DNA of 63,422 bases, filler included, from Olpidium bornovanus S191 (lineage: Eukaryota; Fungi; Olpidiomycota), in the NCBI GenBank assembly GCA_017911155.1. It is 29 parts of 29 records of this genome, joined end to end, with 100 filler letters (N's around TTAATTAATTAA, not from the genome) between each part and the next. Parts side by side here need not be neighbours in the genome. Positions count along the whole stretch, not along the records: positions 42,797 to 52,615 come from JAEFCI010003067.1; 28 more parts are not named here. One strand, written 5' to 3'. The position numbers and the translations under genes were made by a program. Below are positions 42,797 to 52,615 of the stretch, piece by piece. Position 1 is the first letter of the stretch, and the number at the start of each line of letters is the position of its first letter. The notes beneath the pieces are model-generated. The model was not told the origin of the DNA. It saw only the letters and a list, made by a program, of their open reading frames with translations, and did no database searches.

Positions 42797-44595
42797 CCAT
42801 GTATCCATCCCGTCTATCTTGTGCACGAACGGCGCGCGAAGCGTGTAGCGACCCTTCCCCTTGCCGTCGGCCTGCTTCGGCACCCGAACGACCTCGTCGA
42901 GCGGCATATTATACCCTAGGTAACAAGTGTAGTTCCAGCCACCGTAAAGTGGATATCGTGGCCGCAGCTGGAGGAGCGACCGGTCACGGACACTCTCCAG
43001 GCGAAAGTTCGATGTCGACACGTTGCCAATCTCATCGCGGTAGTACGGATTTCGGGCAGAGAGCGGGAGAACCAGGTTTAGCGACTGGACAACCGACGTA
43101 AGATGCTGCACGTGCGAGTACAACTGGTAGTCCACCCGGCGGAATTGTCCCTTCAGCCTAGTCGGGAGGATATGATTAGAGTGTGCGGGGCGGTAGTGGA
43201 AGCACTCCAAACATAACCATACAAATTTGGAACGAAGTGTGGAACTTTATTATGCGTATCGGTTTCCGCATTAATACGAGTTTAACCCCTAGAATGTACC
43301 TTGGCCCGACGTGAACAAAATGGTAGTGCTCCTCGACGGCAGCATTGCCGCCCCAATGCGAGATCTCGATTTCGCGCAGCAGGCTCTTGGCGGCAACAAT
43401 GCCCTTCAGGCTCTCGAAATGGGTGAGCAATGGTTCCTCCGAGAACGCGCTGACATTCCCATAAGGCCCGAACGTAATCAATGATCCGGAGCGGTCAACG
43501 GGGAGCGGGCCTTGTGGAGCCGAAAGGATGGTGTCTGAAGGGAATCTTAATCGGTCGAGATGTCCACAAGTGTTATTGTCCGCGTATGAGCTCATACTCG
43601 CAACCACGGATGTCCGTAATCGATGTCCACGAGCAGAGCGCAAAGAATTAGACGTTGAATACCGTACCGGACGACTATCTTCTGCAAATTGCTCGCGTAA
43701 GGCGACATGAAGTATATGTTGCCTTCGTAGTAAAGCGTCTGACGGTCGTTCTGGTCCACTTCCAGCGGAAGCGGGTACAACAGGTCAGTAAAAGTGAAAC
43801 GAATTGTGATTGTTCTCGTCGTCGAAGGGGCTAACGGTGGGTCCAGCGTTATCTTGTAATTTTGTAGTTGCCTAAACGTAGACGGCCGAGAAACGGTTTA
43901 GAACCAAGTCACGCCACTCCGGCTATCGTATCTCGTATGCCTGTCGCGCGCTCATCACAACGGCGTTATTGAGCTTCGAGCGCACGGCGCAAATTAGGCA
44001 ACGCGCGGCGACTACCGGCCAACGCCTTTTCCTGAGACTTCACTGTCTAGGCAGCACAAAAAGCCGGTTCGCAATTTCTCACTTCTTTTGAAGGCGAATG
44101 GCGCGCGCAGCAAATGTAAACACACCTCTCGTTCTCGACACCGCCCTCCCGCATGTCCAGTTTGAGCCCGGTTTTCTTGTCCGTGCATGAAAAATGGGCG
44201 ACATTTCCCGCGCGAGCCAATGGGATCACGACGTGGTACGCGGACACCGCCTGCTTCCCCGAATTTTCGACGGCAAGGGAGATCGTCTCGCGAACGTTTC
44301 CGCCCGTGGAGAGGTCGACGGTGCGGATGAGGTTCGCGTGGAACAGCGAGCTGGCAGAAGCGGGCAGCGGCGGCGCCGCGGTTGCCGGCACGGGGCAGAC
44401 GGTGAGGAGGCCGAGGACGACCGCTGCGACACACCGCAGGATCGCCGCAGCCTGGGGTCGCAGCCCCAGCAAGGGCAAAGCGTGGCTTCTCCGCTTGACA
44501 CCCCCGTCCCGCTGGGCCGCAGTGTCCGTCCGCGGCGGCGGTTCTCCGGGGGCTCCTGTCAACATCGCTCGGTCTTCCCCACGCCGAGACGTCAT
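42797..44595 (-). CDS. OST1: Oligosaccharyltransferase subunit ribophorin I (3' truncated)
   Basis: Signal-like hydrophobic segment, NLIRTVDLS, YPLPLEVDQNDRQTLYY, ITFGPYGNV, SLLREIEISHWGGNAAVEEHY, YYRDEIGNVSTS and LQLRPRYPLYGGWNY, all Ribophorin_I signatures. Confidence 0.95.
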
Positions 44596-47412
44596 CTCCG
44601 CGCGGTTTCGTTCGCGCGCGCTCCGTGTGCGTCTGCAGACGGGAAGAGCGGGGGGCGTTTCCGAGCGGGGTCCATCGCGGGAAGAAATACAGTTGATGGG
44701 AAAAAAAAATGATTTGAGGCAATTCGACTCCGCTTGGGGCTCTTGCCAGCTGAAGACGCGCCCCGCGCAGCAAAAGCCTCGCGGTTGCAGCGGCGCTGCC
44801 TGCCCGAAGGTCCAATTCCTGCGGGTTCTTGGCTCCGGCCTGCGACGCGCTCCGTCACGCAGGTTCCGAAGTATGGGGCGAAAGGAGGCGACGTTTGGTC
44901 GACGAAAACCAATCAACAGGTCGCAACGAACCCTGCCGCAGCTCGCTTGCCGTGCGCCTATTCCGCGGAGCTTGCGTCACCATCAATTCCGCCAGGGACA
45001 GCCGGCAACAGCTCCTCACAGGGTTTCTCTACCTGGCGAAGGAAAGCTCGGAAGTCTGACAACCTTGACTCGCATCTTAGATTCACTACACCACGGTGAG
45101 AATTGCTCCCTCAGAATAAGCGCACCAATCTTGGGCTGAATCGGCGGCAAGTCATGCAGCGAACATTTCAGTTCTGCACAAATCCTGCAAAAACCCTGAT
45201 CGTGCAAAAAAATCCAGGCGCTCTGCGGGGAGTATTTTTGACGGCTGGCCGCGTGCCTTCTTTTCATTTTTTTGATAATTGCATTCTGCCACGAACGTTA
45301 AATCGTCTTTTGAATTCTGCGGCAAATCATGCCCCAAATCCTGCAGCAAATCCCGCTACAAATTCTGTCGTGAATTCTACTGCGAATCCTGCCACACATT
45401 GTGCAGCAGTCCTGTGATGTACCCGCAGCAAAATTCAGTTGCGGATTTTGCAATAAGTTCCGCAATAATTCGGAATGATTGGAATCTTGGCGGAAACTTT
45501 TATTTAGTAAACCAGCTATTACTATCTGATTTGTATTTCACTACTACAATTATATTTTATACATATTATTGCTACAATATATTACTACTACAATTGTAGA
45601 TCATAGTATTTCGGGCCTATGATAGATTGCTAAGTTGGGCATTGTCCATAATAAGTATCGGACCAATAGGTGCGGTTTTGGCCAACGAACGATGCATGAC
45701 TGGGATTTTGTTGAAAATGTTGCGGGGACCTAGACAACGGTCAGAACGGAAGCATCAGCAGCAACGGCGAGGGCTGCAACCGCGGCAACCGGCGCAACGG
45801 CCAAAATGGTGGCAACAGGCGCAACCGCTCCAACGTTCGCAATGACGGTAACGCAACACGAGTTCGCCGATTCGGGAGATTTGAAAATTCACAGGGTTCG
45901 TGGGTTTCGCAGATTCAGAATCCCGGCGCCGGAATTGAAGCTGGAGTTGGAGCCGGGATTCGCGTATTCACGGAATTTGCAGATACGCGGGATCGGGAGG
46001 TTTGCATATTCACGGGATTCGCAGATTAGCAGGATTCATTTGGGGGGTTTGCATACTCGCGGGATTCGTATATTCGCAGGATGAACAAGTTCACAGAATT
46101 CGCAGTTCGCAGGCTTCGCAGATTCACAGATTCCAAATTCGATGGAGCCAGAACCAGAAATGAAACTGGAGCTGGAGGCGGAATTACGCCAAGTTCGCAA
46201 ATGTGGAGATTCAGATTCGATGGACTCTGGCCGGAGCTGGAACCGGAGCCTGGATTTGAAGATGTGCGTGATTCGCATATTCGGAGGTTTTACGTATTGA
46301 CGCGATCAGGGGATTTGCAGAATACACAGATTCTTAGCATTCGCCTATTTGCGAAATTGGCAGACTTAGATTCTCAGAGCCGGACCAAGAGCGACAGGCT
46401 GGAGAAACGGGTATTGCAATTTTTAGATTTATAGTATGCGCAAATTCCCCGGATTTGCGGATTAGCTGGATTCGCCGGTTTCCAAGATAGGAAGATTTAG
46501 ATTTGCGGAACCGGAACCGGAGCCGGAGCCGGAGTTGGACCCGCAGCCGGAAAAGACAGAGCCAGAACAAGCGCAAAAGCCAAAGACGGAGCCGGTATTC
46601 ACAAATTCACGGGAATAACAGATTTGTGGATTTGTCGGTTTATAGCCTTTGCAGATTCGCGGGAATTCGAAATTCAAATCACAGGTTTTGCAGATTCGCA
46701 GCAGTTTGCGGGTTTGCGGAATTCGGAAAATTGAGGGATTTTCAGGTTCGCAGGATTTGCAGATTTGCAGAATTCGCAGATTCACCTGGATTCGCAGATG
46801 TTTCACGGACGCGGACGCGGAGCTGGAACCAGAACTAAAGCAGGAGACGGATCCAGAGCAAAAGGAAGATTTGGAAGCAACCTACATAGAAAGCAGATAT
46901 GAAGGCAGATTTGGAAAGCCATCCCGGAGGGGTTTGCAAAGCAGATCTGGACGGCAGATTCCAAGGCATATCTGGAAGGCAGGTTAGGAGAGCAGGTTCA
47001 GATTCGGAGGCCAATTCAAAAAACAGATTCAGGTTGCATCCGGGAAGCAGATTTTGAAGGCAGGTTCGGAAGGCTGATTTGGAAGTCAGATTCGGAACCA
47101 GCATAATACGTAACAAGATCTGGCCCAGGATTTGCCACCCTTTGCGACCAGGATCTGCTGTACAGGATCTGCAGCAGGATTTGTAGTTTGTGGCAGGGTC
47201 GCAGCAGAAACTTATAACGTAATTTAAAATAGAATTCGATAAAATTTGTAAAGAAGTTTAAGGCAGTTTTGCAGCAAATCTCTGGTAGGGTTAACTGCAG
47301 AACTCGAGCCAGCATTCACGACAGGCGTAGCTGCAGGATCTGTAACAAACGCAGAATTCAAGGCAGATTGTCAGAATGGCTTTACCGGCCAAGCCACACA
47401 CCTGGTGAATAA

Positions 47413-47486
47413 AGGCAGATAGCTCATTCGGTTAGAGCGTCGTTCGGGGAAGGGGAAGTTCCTGAGTTCAACCCTCGGTCAGCCCA
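47413..47486 (+). tRNA. tRNA-like sequence (degenerate) inside the 5' LTR
   Basis: Full cloverleaf spacing: acceptor AGGCAGA/TCAGCCC-A (5/7 paired), D stem GCTC/GAGC, 7-nt loop CGGGGAA with a poorly paired anticodon stem, variable loop AGTTC, T arm CTGAG-TTCAACC-CTCGG, then CTTTT. Lacks U33, so it is probably not a functional tRNA. Confidence 0.65.
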
Positions 47487-47646
47487 CTTTTGATGCGCAA
47501 CAGTTTATGAGCCCAATCGTGACTTCGTTTCTCTGATTGTGGTTACGCGAGTGGCCGAGCCCCATTGACAGCAGTGCCTGAGGTGCCTAGCGCAAGGGGG
47601 GGTATTGGATTGGTTTTGCCAGGTGAGCCAGACACCTGGTGAATAG

Positions 47647-47717
47647 GGGCAGATAGCTCAGTTGGTTTGAGCGTCCCTCCAAGGGGAAGGTCCTGAGTTC
47701 AACAATCGGTTGGCCCA
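47647..47717 (+). tRNA. tRNA-like sequence (degenerate) inside the 3' LTR
   Basis: GGGCAGA-TA-GCTC-AGTTGGTTT-GAGC-G-TCCCT-CCAA-GGGGA-AGGTC-CTGAG-TTCAACA-ATCGG-TTGGCCC-A-CTTTT. A-box TAGCTCAGTTGG and B-box-like GAGTTCAA are present. The anticodon loop is shortened by 3 nt. Confidence 0.65.
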
Positions 47718-48900
47718 CTTTTGATGCGCAACAGGATTTACCATACAAATTGGGCACAATACAAGACAGTATTTGCCAAAGGATTCGCCAAAAATTTAAG
47801 GCAGAGGTCATAAAAAGATTCACCGCAGAACTTAACGCAGGATACTTACTGAATTTTTGACAGAGTTTAAAGCTGGATTTGGTATTTGCGGCAGAATTTC
47901 GATTTGTCACAGGGTTCGGCGGAATTAAAGCTTGATTTAGCATGGGACTCGGTGCAGAACTTTCAGGGTGGTTCGCCCCAAAATCCCAGCAGAATTTGTG
48001 GTAGGAATCGCGGCTGGGCGTACAACAGGATTTGTGGTAAAATTTCCCGCAGACTCTGCTGCATATTTCCCGCAGAATCTGCTGCATATTCCCCGCTGAC
48101 TTCACTGCAGCCCAGCAGAAATTCCCGCAGAACTTGCTGCATCCAAGCAGTAATTCTCGCATCCCTGCATAATTTGCCGCCAATTTCAAGGCAAAATTTG
48201 CGGCAGAATTGGACATTAAATCGCCAACGGATTCGCGACAAGCCTCGAGGCAAGATCTGTGGCAGAAATCGACACGAAATTTGATGCAAGGTCCGCGGAC
48301 AAATTTGCCGCAGAATTTGCGGCAGGATTGGCAGCAGAATTCACAACAATCTTCGCAGCAGAATCAGCTCAAAGTTCACAGGAAATGCTCCGTGGTGACC
48401 CTGGCGATATCTCTGAGGAAGCAAAAACTTGCCAAGGTTAGTGAGTTTGGCCGGTTCTCCAGGTGCGTACCCGCCGGGGTCAGCCTGAGGCCGCATGTGG
48501 GGAATTTTTTTTTCTGTATGTTTTGGGAGGGCCGCGCAGGCAAACCTTCCGCCGCACGCCGTTTTCGTCGCCCGCGCGACCCCCGCGCTCCGGGGAAAGG
48601 GCGGGACGACCGCCGCAGCAGCAGCAACAGCAGCGCCACACGTCGCAACACCGCCGCACTCCCCTCCCCGTGCGTCCGCGGAGCGGCTTCGAAACAGGCG
48701 TCGCCAGGGGGGCCCGCGCCGGCGCGGGCGCTTGCCGCGGCCGGCGGCCAGTCTCTGCGGAGTGAGCGGCGCGCGGGGCCGCGCTTCGTTTGCCTCGCGC
48801 GGCGGGCTGGGCTTGGAACGGGACTGCGGTGCTGACTCTGCCCGGCGCTCTCTCCTTGCGCGGCAGCAGGTCCGATCTCCAATCGGCGGGAAACGCAGAC

Positions 48901-51900
48901 ATGGAGCCGACGCCGTCTGCCGAAGTTGGGCCAGCGCTCTCGCGCGAAGACAGCGGATCATGTTTCTCACGGCAGGCTTCAGTCGTGGACGTGCTGCACC
49001 TGCATGACAACAGGATACAGTTTGACAACGTCTACCTCAACTCCCTGCACGCTTTGAAGCGCCTCGAGCTCCGCAATAACGCGGGGGTGCCCATACTTGT
49101 CAAATTACGTTCGAACTTGGGCACTCAGGTCGCCTTCCAATTGACGAACGAGAACCTGCCGCGGGCGTTGGTGCCGCAGCAAGCTGTCGAGCCGCCGAAC
49201 TCTTCTGCCGTCGCCTCGCCGCTCTCCGAGTCTGAGCTCGCGCTGGGCTTGAAGTCCGTGCTCAGGCCGGCCGCTGACGCGGCCCCGTCCGCAGTCCCTC
49301 GTACATCTGCGAACGGGTCTGTGACGTCAAAGTCCGAAGCGGCGCTTTCGATACTGAGCCACTCCACCGATTCGCTTCCGACGTCGGAGGCTGGCGTTGA
49401 ACGTGCTGACCGCGACTACGACGACGAAGACGGCGCCGAGGACGAAGACGTGTTTGTGGACGCTGACGAGCACCTCGGTACGTCCGCGTGATAGGAACGA
49501 TGCGGACTTGCCTGCTGTTTGGGTGGTTGCTGACACCGCTGACTCCGCTGTGCACTTGTAGGCGAATCCGAAGGCTCGGATATGTTGCCCTCCCCGGACA
49601 TCGCAAATATGGGAGGGGGTACAGGTCATCACTTCAACAGCGTGGCCTACGGGGAACACAGCCACCAGTATAATCAACTCTTTAACTACGTCAACCATAT
49701 CGACGAAGTGGGTATTCTGCCTGGTAAATCCCAGCAGATCATAATTGCATTCCTTCCGGATGACAAGGGCGAGTCACGGAGGAAAGGGGACGCGTTAGAT
49801 GGAGATACCTCTGTTGAGACAAGTGATCCTGAAACGTACGACTTCTTCGAAGTCAACGGCTTCATTCTTTTGTACGCGTACCTCCTTGGACCGCGCTTCG
49901 TGCTGGAAAGCTCGTTGAGACCACGAGAAGTCGAAGGGTCACCCACGGAGTCACCCAGTCAGAATCGCGTATCTTGGAAAACAAAGGGCCGACCAGTCCT
50001 GTTTTCAGGTAGCGGTATGTTTTCGCGGAAATCGTCAGAAGACGTCCCTAACTGGAGTGGTTTCTGGCGCGCAAGCGGCATAACAAGCAAGGTGCTGGAT
50101 GACAGCGTGTCACTCTCGCCAGTGAGCCAGGATGGCACGGTCGCCTCCACTGCGCCGGTTCGAGAAGTCGAGCCACACGACGACCAGTCTGTAGCTCCCA
50201 ACAAGCCGCGAGGAGTGGATTATCAATGCGAGATCAAATTTAGGTCACGTGTGTGCCGGTCAGTACTGTGGACTGACGAGTCGGCGATCGCTTTCGACGA
50301 TTGTATCGTGGGGGGGACGTACTTCAGAGACTTCACAATCTGGAACAAGTCTGAGATTGAGCTCTATTGGTGCCTCAACACAGTGGATCTCAGCAGTATA
50401 CCCAACTTTGCGGACACGCTCCGTTTTTACGACTACCATTCTGGCCGGCCGCTGGATCTCCAGCATGGCGAAAATACCACGAGCCCAGGAGTCGCTGACA
50501 ACAGCCGAAATCTTGGCGCCTCGCTCTCTCACAAAACGGTCGTTCTCCAGCCACCGATTTCCGGATTTGCGCACAGGCGAATCAGGGTGGTGTTTCGGCC
50601 AAACCTGGTCGGTGATTTCAACTACGATCTCCAGCTGGAAAACGCGAACGACGCGTCAAACGTTGTAGAATGTCACCTGCATGCCACGGTGCGGCCCGCC
50701 GGCTCACCCGCGGTGGAGGAGTCGCTGGTAGTGTCTTCCGGCAACGTTTTGGACTTTGGAGATTGCTGTGCTGGTGCATGGGCCAAGCAGCAGCTCGTCC
50801 TACGCAACATCGGAGAATGGCCGCTGGAAGTCAAATTCGTCGGACCGGAAGACACTGGGAACACCGTGGACGCTAGCGAAGCAATCGACAGCGTTGTGTT
50901 TGACCTCGGAGCTGAGCCGGACGACCTTGATAGGGAGCTGGACGATGATGATACGGTGCTTGCCGACTTTACCTTGGTTCAACCTTCAAGCGTCGCGAAT
51001 GCCGATGTGGAGCCACTGGCGATCAGCACGGTTGATGCGGACCTGAAGACTGCGGCGGGGCTGATGTCGCCTCTCGCCTCCCCATCGGTCGATTTCAGCA
51101 GCTGGCAAAGTTCGAAGGCGAGCCGCACCTCTTCCAGGGCCACCAGCCCGACTCCTTCGAAAAAGCATTCGCTCCAAATCACAGCTCCGTTGATTCCGCC
51201 GCCGGCACACCAGGAAGAGTCCCTCCCGGCATCCGGCGCACCCCGATCAGCAGCTTGGAGCTATCAGGGCGCGGCAGAGGGCGTGCAAAGGCCGCGCCGT
51301 TCAAGTGGCAGCCGAAGTGAAAAACCTACCGTGACACGGACAGGCTCCGGGCGCGGAGCGCTGACGAGGATAGAGGAGCTTTTCCTGAAGCCTGGCACCG
51401 AGAGGACTGTGCAGGTCTCCTACCGGCCGCGCAAGGACTCGTCACTGAATGATTACAAAGCCGGCAAGCTCGTACGGAGGATCTTCCGGATCGTTCTCTT
51501 TTACAGTCCCATTAAGTACGCCACGTTCACCGATCATAACCGGCACGAGGAGAGCACGGACACAAGCACCGCTCTCTCCGGCAGGCCGCAGACCACGCTA
51601 ATGGAGCGGAAGATAATTCAGTGCAAGGCCCGGACGTGCACGTCGTTCGTAGACATCCAGCCCGCAGACGGGCTAATCAATTTCGGCGACACGGACGTTG
51701 GAGTGCTCAAATCCCATTGTATGACAATCTTCAACCAGTCGGAGATCCCCGCGCAAGTGCAGCTTTGGTTCACCTCCAAAATCCTGAACGCCTACCGCGA
51801 CGTCATCAACATCGCTCCGAACAAGAGCGTGGAAGTGAAACTCGACATTCACCCGCGGAAAATAAATCCCGACTACCGGAAACAGATCGTCATCGCAAAC

Positions 51901-52615
51901 TTGCTGAACCGAGATAACGACAAGATCGTGGAAGTGAGGGCGGTGAACATCGACAAGCACCGCATCACGTTCCACTCGTTATTCTACCGAGTCGGCACGC
52001 GGGAGAACACCAACTGGCTGGACTTTGGGTCGATGGTCCTCAATTGCCCGCAGGTCAGGGCGCTGACCATTGAGAACATTTCGCAGACCAGTGCCCTCCC
52101 CCTCGAAGTCACCACAAGTCTGCCCGCGGAAGTCCGGGTGTACCGCCAGGTCCCCGCCGGTGAACGCATGCTGGACCGCGAGAGGGAGCGGATGAAGACT
52201 CGCGGAAGGGAGCGTCAGTTGGATGCGCTGACCCAACAGGAGCTGCCGTCGGCGTTCGACCAGCTGCCGCTTGAGCTGACTGGCTCCGCGGTAAACCCCG
52301 GTGTCTTGCACATCCCGAAAACGGAGGAGCCGTCCAGCACGGATCTTTCGCAAGCTGCAAAAGTCGTCGGGAGAACTTCGGCTGCCGATCATCCACCGCC
52401 AGCTGCTGAGAGCGGCGAGGAAGGTGCTCCTCTGCCAGCTACAGAGAATGCGAGGCAGGCGGGACCGGGGGCGGCCCACGCGGAGACGAGTCATCCGTCG
52501 GCCTTGTCGGCCTCCAACGTCGGCGAAGGCATCGCGCAGACCGCCGCCAGCGACTTACCAAGTCTGGTTACAAAAATTGGCGATCCTTTCTCCCCTTCGC
52601 TCCCAAATTCCGGCC
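48901..52615 (+). CDS. Large multi-immunoglobulin-fold (ASH/PapD-like repeat) protein, 3' truncated
   Basis: Exon 48901-49477 joins in frame to a >3-kb exon from 49562. Repeated beta-rich modules: IQFDNVYLNSLHALKRLELRNN, IAFDDCIVGGTYFRDFTIWN, LDFGDCCAGAWAKQQLVLRN, INFGDTDVGVLKSHCMTIFN, LDFGSMVLNCPQVRALTIEN ((L/I)xFG...xxN pattern of ASH-like domains). Confidence 0.8.

Follow-up and report, generated by a model that had tools for sequence, protein, structure and literature searches.

A probable Helenus-type miniature retroelement with tRNA-like modules in its terminal repeats in the zoosporic fungus Olpidium bornovanus

Helenus elements are miniature terminal-repeat retrotransposons (TRIMs) with tRNA-derived sequence in their long terminal repeats (LTRs), in which a box A (TRGCY...YGG) and a box B (GGTTC) are defined; their total length is 311-1263 bp, the tRNA-like part lies near the 3' end of the LTR and is followed by T-rich sequence, and the interiors end in G-runs before TGTTG (Kojima 2024, PMC10886601). 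Among fungi the published hosts are the Pucciniales and three Agaricomycetes only, all of them Basidiomycota, and the fungal members mostly have a primer binding site (PBS) for the anticodon loop of the initiator methionine tRNA (tRNA-iMet), a Copia-like PBS region and 5-bp duplications of the target site (TSDs); most Helenus elements are without a usable tRNA, and their use of RNA polymerase III (Pol III) is unvalidated (PMC10886601). The present analysis concerned a 365-bp element at positions 47369-47733 of a stretch of 63,422 nucleotides, filler included, from Olpidium bornovanus S191 (GenBank assembly GCA_017911155.1). This whole stretch is referred to here as the window, and the piece of it that holds the element is a 9.8-kb contig, JAEFCI010003067.1 (positions 42,797 to 52,615). 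The element is very probably a single Helenus-type TRIM, inserted long ago and now inactive, which belongs to a multi-copy family in O. bornovanus. By its structure, it would add a new family and a new host lineage to an element type that has already been described.

Structure of the element and its tRNA-like modules

The element consisted of an LTR of 134 bp, an interior of 100 bp and a second LTR of 131 bp. The 5' LTR (47369-47502, plus strand; TGTCAG...GCGCAACA) and the 3' LTR (47603-47733, plus strand; TATTGG...GCGCAACA) are colinear direct repeats of each other, with 81.8% identity across 132 aligned columns, and matched one another by BLAST within the 9.8-kb piece at E 1e-32. This is concordant with the two LTRs of 134 and 131 bp, about 82% identical, which had been proposed in a preliminary description of this DNA. 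The 5' LTR opens with TG and the 3' LTR with TA, and CAACA closes both. The differences within the pair comprised 14 transitions, 10 transversions and 5 gap columns, and with LTRs that have diverged by about 18% (Kimura two-parameter distance, K2P, 0.21) the copy in the window is dead and decayed. A sequence search of the 9.8-kb piece found no third LTR copy and no solo LTR.

The interior (47503-47602, plus strand) is non-coding, and stop-free frames did not exceed about 50 codons anywhere in the element. At its two edges, the half-tRNA-iMet PBS and the polypurine tract (PPT) that had been claimed for it could be read. The PBS (47503-47514, plus strand; GTTTATGAGCCC) stands immediately 3' of CAACA and agrees at 11/12 positions with the half-tRNA-iMet primer site of the Copia/Ty5 type; the chance of such a match at a fixed site was estimated by us at approximately 2e-6. 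The PPT (47594-47602, plus strand; AAGGGGGGG) adjoins the TATTGG of the 3' LTR. The PBS of the family, GGTTATGAGCCC, is predicted to be complementary to the anticodon stem-loop of initiator tRNA-Met, and it is with this identical 12-mer that 48 published Helenus interiors begin (Kojima 2024 sequence file, PMC10886601).

Each LTR contains a tRNA-like module. The module of the 3' LTR (47647-47717, plus strand) aligned to model positions 1-71 of the Rfam tRNA model RF00005 with a score of 30.3 bits (E 0.0041), which is above the gathering score of 29, and its anticodon loop was shortened to 3 nt in this alignment. The decayed module of the 5' LTR (47413-47486, plus strand) was assigned from its homology to the 3' LTR module and from relaxed ARAGORN, the only program setting that recognised it, as tRNA-Pro(GGG). 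The original proposal of a tRNA-shaped segment in every LTR was thus upheld, with the qualification that of the two modules only that of the 3' LTR passes a formal tRNA test. Default ARAGORN predicted no tRNA on the piece, and when the whole piece was compared with Rfam at E ≤ 10, tRNA was the only match and 5S was absent.

The box A pattern TAGCT...TGG/CGG was found in both LTRs, the A box being TAGCTCATTCGG in the 5' LTR and TAGCTCAGTTGG in the 3' LTR, and the corresponding B-box regions were GAGTTCAACCC and GAGTTCAACAA. In the 5' LTR module a T arm (CTGAG-TTCAACC-CTCGG) and a discriminator A at 47486 could be recognised. As had been predicted, a TTTT run was read just past the discriminator in both LTRs, one base beyond it in each case: at 47488-47491 (plus strand) in the 5' LTR, where it is a possible Pol III terminator, and at 47719-47722 (plus strand) in the 3' LTR. 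A usable anticodon arm has been lost from both LTRs of this copy.

Copies of the family and the link to Ty1/Copia

Two public sequencing runs, X1 and X2, each matched short parts of the stretch (share 0.06). The material compared was assembled Logan contigs, not raw reads, and these were aligned to 45300-49800 at a likeness of at least 80%. Between 28 and 29 contigs were aligned per run, mostly less than 95% alike, and of these about 25 in each run, short, of high depth and 80-95% alike, fell on the element only. The unique DNA of the contig in the window was present in the runs, as record 1 covered 168 nt of it with 0 differences and record 9 covered 278 nt with 3 differences. Record 14, from X2, covered 1207 nt with 2 differences and had two GT..AG introns spliced out, and X2 is therefore probably RNA. 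High depth was limited to the bins across 47263-47715, where the summed values were 137-683, compared with 0-6 in the flanking bins and with a depth of 3.3 for record 1, on unique sequence. Since contig depth is no copy number, the depth over the element was read only as 'many copies'.

Seven of the contigs (records 4-8, 11 and 12) span an LTR end, the interior and the beginning of the next LTR. Loose ends of the alignments at 47501-47503, 47605 and 47733 coincide with the proposed LTR ends, and beyond them the contigs continued into 72-255 nt of unrelated and mutually different flank. The loose part before 47605 ends in TG, which gives an LTR starting there with TGTTGGA, and the LTR of another copy opens with TGTTGGAAT (loose end at 47599). 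As reconstructed from these contigs, the LTR termini of the other copies are the classic inverted termini TGTTG...CAACA. The question of whether the structure is an element or a local duplication was answered by the existence, in two runs, of diverged LTR-interior-LTR copies with different flanks.

The differences between these copies and the one in the window fell at informative places. Position 47504 was G in 17/17 of the other-copy contigs (12 from X1 and 5 from X2), which restores GGTTATGAGCCC. At 47427 and 47429 the other copies restore the A box TAGCTCAGTTGG, at 47463 and 47470 they give a perfect T stem with a TTCGA loop, and at 47442, 47443, 47446, 47451 and 47452 their bases result in an anticodon stem TCCCT/AGGGA that carries the loop CCGGGAT. 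Their anticodon is GGG (Pro) with a C at position 33, yet their D arm is of the TAGCTCAGTTGGTTAGAGC type. The anticodon and the D arm would thus point to different isotypes for the parent tRNA, as Kojima describes for most Helenus elements. Among the differences listed for the other copies (46 more stand outside the list), none fell within 47483-47503, a segment comprising the tRNA 3' end, the TTTT run, GATGCGCAACA and the first PBS base. The preliminary description had also claimed that the anticodon decayed while the promoter boxes were kept by selection. The first part agrees with the loss of the arm from both LTRs; selection on the boxes is no more than suggested, since the boxes of the copy in the window are poorer than those of the other copies.

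At 47436 (X1) and 47451 (X2), further loose ends were seen in contigs which match only the part of the module from the D arm to the 3' end and have different sequence upstream. They may stem from true tRNA genes of the parent type or from further sub-families, or may be chimeric. A comparison of the stop-free 50-codon frame of the element with the protein database retrieved no further copies. One match of a family-specific 18-mer to a viral contig (L026) was dismissed as chance, since the likeness is confined to those 18 bases.

The 20-mer GCGCAACAGKTTATGAGCCC, in which the LTR end GCGCAACA is joined to the PBS GGTTATGAGCCC, was found in 25 loci of Joint Genome Institute metagenome contigs. 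None of these loci had the LTR or the interior of the element, and none had a tRNA; being without a common LTR or interior, they were rejected as copies of the family and regarded as other elements that share the junction. All three junction loci whose open reading frames were checked (L005, L007 and L019) encode Ty1/Copia polyproteins downstream, with copia-type gag, integrase and RVT_2 in L005 and L007, and gag, integrase and RVT_2 in L019. The LTRs of L005 and L007 start with TGTTGC after a G-run PPT and end with GCGCAACA. Because the same 20-mer forms the LTR/PBS junction in the checked autonomous Ty1/Copia loci, the junction in the window is, judged on its sequence, genuinely of the Copia type. 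The termini, PBS and PPT which the integrase and reverse transcriptase need are likewise predicted to be of the Copia kind, and we infer that a Copia element of the Olpidium genome mobilises the family.

The metagenome loci presented some features of their own. L005 (minus strand) is a 5,060-bp soil-metagenome contig in which the junction occurs twice, 4,738 bp apart, around an uninterrupted Copia gag-pol of 1,489 aa; the start and end of this contig are the same sequence, which may mean that the form is circular or in tandem, or that a young element was wrapped around in the assembly. In L007 (9640-14307, minus strand) a Copia element has a 5' LTR fragment (127 bp present) that is 100% identical to its 3' LTR, the termini TGTTGCG...GCGCAACA, the PPT GGAGTGGGAG and an intact polyprotein of 1,395 aa. 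It appears, from these features, to be a recently active relative of elements able to mobilise such TRIMs. In L019 (1689-4697, minus strand) a Ty1/Copia-type pol (rve, SH3_retrovirus, RVT_2) has a chromodomain (PF00385, E 7e-11) between the integrase and the reverse transcriptase. Chromodomains are typical of Gypsy chromoviruses, not of Copia elements.

Genomic surroundings, proposed life cycle and alternative explanations

The element is embedded in an intergenic tract of approximately 3 kb (45300-48350) made of degenerate 8-26-nt tandem units, of the types GCAGATTT, GCAGAATTTGC and CAGGATCTGC, with a G-rich skew on the plus strand. The repeat tract itself had a low, single-copy-like depth in the aligned runs. 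Downstream, from 49582 to the end of the piece, an immunoglobulin-repeat protein of the HYDIN/CFA65/Cep192 type is encoded, and it is 100% identical to the O. bornovanus hypothetical protein BJ554DRAFT_5917 (metagenome-assembled genome, partial). Those of its listed relatives that carry a name belong to the Mucoromycota and chytrids, which fits the phylogenetic position of Olpidium. The BJ554DRAFT_5917 model begins by translating the repeat tract, its residues 1-64 corresponding to 48244-48435. The spliced X2 contig begins only at 48641 (48641-49800), with the GT..AG introns at 48762-48866 and 49477-49560 removed. The N-terminal annotation of this model therefore looks doubtful. The O. bornovanus genome paper reports a binned, non-axenic assembly and contains no transposon analysis (PMC7865070).

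The following life cycle is proposed for the family. The element encodes nothing and would be copied in trans by Ty1/Copia proteins, which would package an RNA extending from the R region of the 5' LTR to the R region of the 3' LTR. An initiator tRNA-Met truncated at its 3' end and annealed at GGTTATGAGCCC would prime the minus strand, the plus strand would start at the G-rich PPT, and the resulting DNA would be integrated by a Copia integrase that recognises the termini TGTTG...GCGCAACA. More speculatively, the tRNA module might act as an internal Pol III promoter. In such a layout, U3 would be approximately the first 40 nt of the LTR, R would roughly coincide with the module as far as the T run, and the last 11 nt, which follow the T run and end in CAACA, would be U5. 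The TTTT of the 5' LTR is then predicted to be partly read through and that of the 3' LTR to terminate the RNA, which is plausible for a four-T terminator.

A number of observations weigh against this interpretation of the element. Only one of the two modules passes the tRNA model, since that of the 5' LTR was missed by Rfam at E ≤ 10 in a 152-nt scan. The B box of the copy in the window is AGTTCAAC and not GGTTCGA, the other copies having GAGTTCGACC. Minimum free energy folding of the modules and of the whole LTRs yielded no cloverleaf, with z values of +0.9 and -1.0 that were not significant, and for this reason the tRNA shape rests on the covariance-model alignment together with the boxes. 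A clean 5-bp TSD is absent. The candidates CAGAT and GGATT, already described as unclean, agree at 1/5 positions in register, and a shift of one base is needed for 4/5 agreement (AGATT/GGATT); this comparison is uninformative because both flanks are GCAGATT-type repeats, and the copy is also old. The other copies are known from short Logan contigs only, among which no second full-length copy and no solo LTR with a TSD was read, and an autonomous partner from the Olpidium genome was not among the sequences read. Finally, unless it is leaky, the conserved TTTT would halt transcription by Pol III short of the PBS, so that Pol III is no more than a possible source of the genomic RNA.

This last point leads to an alternative that is quite possible, if doubtful, in which the TRIM is real but its transposition template has a promoter other than the module. 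Pol II, or read-through from outside, would then supply the genomic RNA, and the module, as a passenger, would either descend from a SINE (short interspersed nuclear element) or tRNA inserted in an ancestral LTR or specify an independent Pol III RNA of about 80 nt ending at the TTTT. For Cassandra, a plant TRIM, the 5S unit is said to be an independently transcribed Pol III RNA. A Pol III transcript would end at the TTTT 11 nt before the end of the LTR, and so before the PBS, in the very segment (47483-47503) without a listed difference; moreover, a contig of the probable RNA run X2 (record 11) crosses the 3' LTR and 72 nt of flank, unlike a Pol III RNA stopping at the T run. Set against this are the A box, T arm and B box, which in the other copies are better kept than the anticodon arm, and better than in the dead copy, as fits selection on promoter boxes, and the length of the LTR, which at 134 bp leaves just ~40 nt upstream for a Pol II promoter. 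Some fungal Pol III enzymes, besides, terminate only weakly at a T4 run, which also counts against a passenger role of the module. The unvalidated status of Pol III use by Helenus elements in general is in line with such a role (Kojima 2024, PMC10886601).

The other two alternatives concern the nature and the source of the sequence. Formally, LTR-interior-LTR equals 1.6 tandem units of ~234 bp, and it could be supposed that a tRNA pseudogene and its surroundings were locally duplicated, the PBS-like and PPT-like strings having arisen by chance. The lack of a clean TSD, the position of the element inside a short-tandem-repeat tract and a faint likeness of the upstream flank CAAGGCAGAT to the PPT region CAAGGGGGGG are compatible with such an origin, the likeness being explained by the recurrence of the AAGGCAGATT unit in the surrounding minisatellite. 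We nevertheless regard it as exceedingly improbable: the 11/12 PBS lies exactly at the end of one repeat and the PPT exactly before the second, the termini are TG..CA (TGTTGG...CAACA in other copies), and many diverged copies with different flanks exist. Indeed, the discrete LTR ends and different flanks of these copies rule out a tandem duplication private to this locus. It is also very improbable that the contig or the repeat family comes from another organism, for instance a basidiomycete, in the non-axenic Olpidium samples, which would make both the host and the novelty wrong. The assembly is a binned metagenome of zoospores grown on cucumber roots (PMC7865070), and all published fungal Helenus elements are from basidiomycetes. 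The same 9.8-kb contig, however, has the HYDIN/Cep192-type gene, for which the relatives listed by name comprise Mucoromycota and chytrids and 0 basidiomycetes, and six 8-11-mers of the LTR are absent from the published Helenus consensus set. An old insertion of a Helenus-type TRIM in O. bornovanus accordingly remains the preferred reading of the locus.

Relation to Helenus and other known systems

Full-text literature searches, which did not cover Repbase, found no such family for Olpidium, in agreement with the earlier statement that none was known from a zoosporic fungus, and no later report of Helenus beyond the host list of Kojima. A member in Olpidium would broaden the host range of Helenus, which among fungi previously comprised rusts and a few Agaricomycetes. 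Olpidium is the zoosporic lineage nearest to the terrestrial fungi. The Olpidium element would provide a second, sequence-unrelated fungal case that combines Copia-type termini and an iMet half-tRNA primer site with a tRNA-like Pol III module, and this case bears on the repeated origin versus the old age of such elements. In practical terms, elements of this type inflate predictions of tRNA genes and pseudogenes and, close to genes, can give rise to regulatory sequences; the copy in the window lies ~0.5 kb upstream of an annotated gene model. No new mechanism is opened, as the Pol III question is common to all Helenus elements.

In the k-mer comparison with the published Helenus consensus set, 0 of the six LTR 8-11-mers tested were found, and the shared k-mers were limited to the 12-mer of the PBS and a generic 14-mer of the D arm. 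Because of the absence of these six k-mers, the Olpidium element is treated as a separate family, and its origin is possibly independent of that of the published Helenus elements. An opposite scenario, which is rather unlikely, is that the Olpidium family and the basidiomycete Helenus elements share ancestry, either as an ancient fungal lineage of tRNA-bearing TRIMs that has co-evolved with one Copia clade from a time before the flagellum was lost, or through horizontal moves between plant-parasitic fungi. This scenario is prompted by the same iMet PBS, the same TGTTG...CAACA termini, the same position of the module in the LTR and the presumed partnership with Copia. To it belongs the related idea that the T4 run defines a tRNA-sized R, with leaky Pol III termination acting like the ignored 5' poly(A) signal of retroviruses.

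Among the more distant systems, the tRNA-derived SINEs (SINE2) are alike in their non-coding character, in a tRNA-derived part with A and B boxes and in their reliance on the enzymes of another element. SINEs have the tRNA head first and a LINE-related (long interspersed nuclear element) or A-rich tail, and are copied by target-primed reverse transcription. A SINE2 was rejected here, as the module starts 45 nt from the beginning of a terminal repeat and the element has a PBS and a PPT but no A-rich tail. Cassandra (plants, 5S ribosomal RNA in the LTRs) and Ajax (a nemertean, with a 5S promoter fragment) resemble the element in design, being TRIMs with a small-RNA gene, its internal Pol III promoter and its terminator in their LTRs. 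They differ in that the module here is tRNA-like and not 5S, and in their hosts and probable autonomous partners; membership in either was rejected on the lack of a 5S match in the Rfam scan.

Ty5 of Saccharomyces and copia of Drosophila are Ty1/Copia elements primed by a 3'-truncated initiator tRNA-Met. The Olpidium element is similar to them in having a PBS complementary to the anticodon stem-loop of tRNA-iMet directly after an LTR that ends in CAACA, and it shares with the metagenomic Copia elements an identical 20-nt LTR/PBS junction. It differs from Ty5 and copia in being without gag or pol, in its interior of only 100 bp and in the tRNA-like module of its LTR.

The closest system is Helenus itself, which is counted among the Pol III-driven TRIMs (TRIMp3), and in particular its fungal families from Pucciniales and Agaricomycetes. 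The host, O. bornovanus (Olpidiomycota), is outside the published host list, a T4 run stands directly after the Olpidium module and is kept in other copies, and the copy in the window is without a clean 5-bp TSD. In other respects the structural features of Helenus were found at this locus, namely the TRIM layout with two short LTRs, a module with boxes A and B toward the 3' end of the LTR, an iMet PBS and a PPT before the 3' LTR. The interior is hardly more than the PBS (GGTTATGAGCCC in the family, with a Copia-type PBS region) and the G-run PPT, the termini of the family's other copies are TGTTG...CAACA, the anticodon arm is non-functional and the anticodon is mismatched to the rest of the tRNA body. 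The proposal of a Helenus-like TRIM, with the order LTR-PBS-PPT-LTR and a module in each LTR, was therefore borne out, and the dimensions of the element (134/100/131, 365 bp) fall in the published size range, near those of Helenus-4_PTrit (130/95/355; PMC10886601), with which type of element it also has the PBS 12-mer in common.

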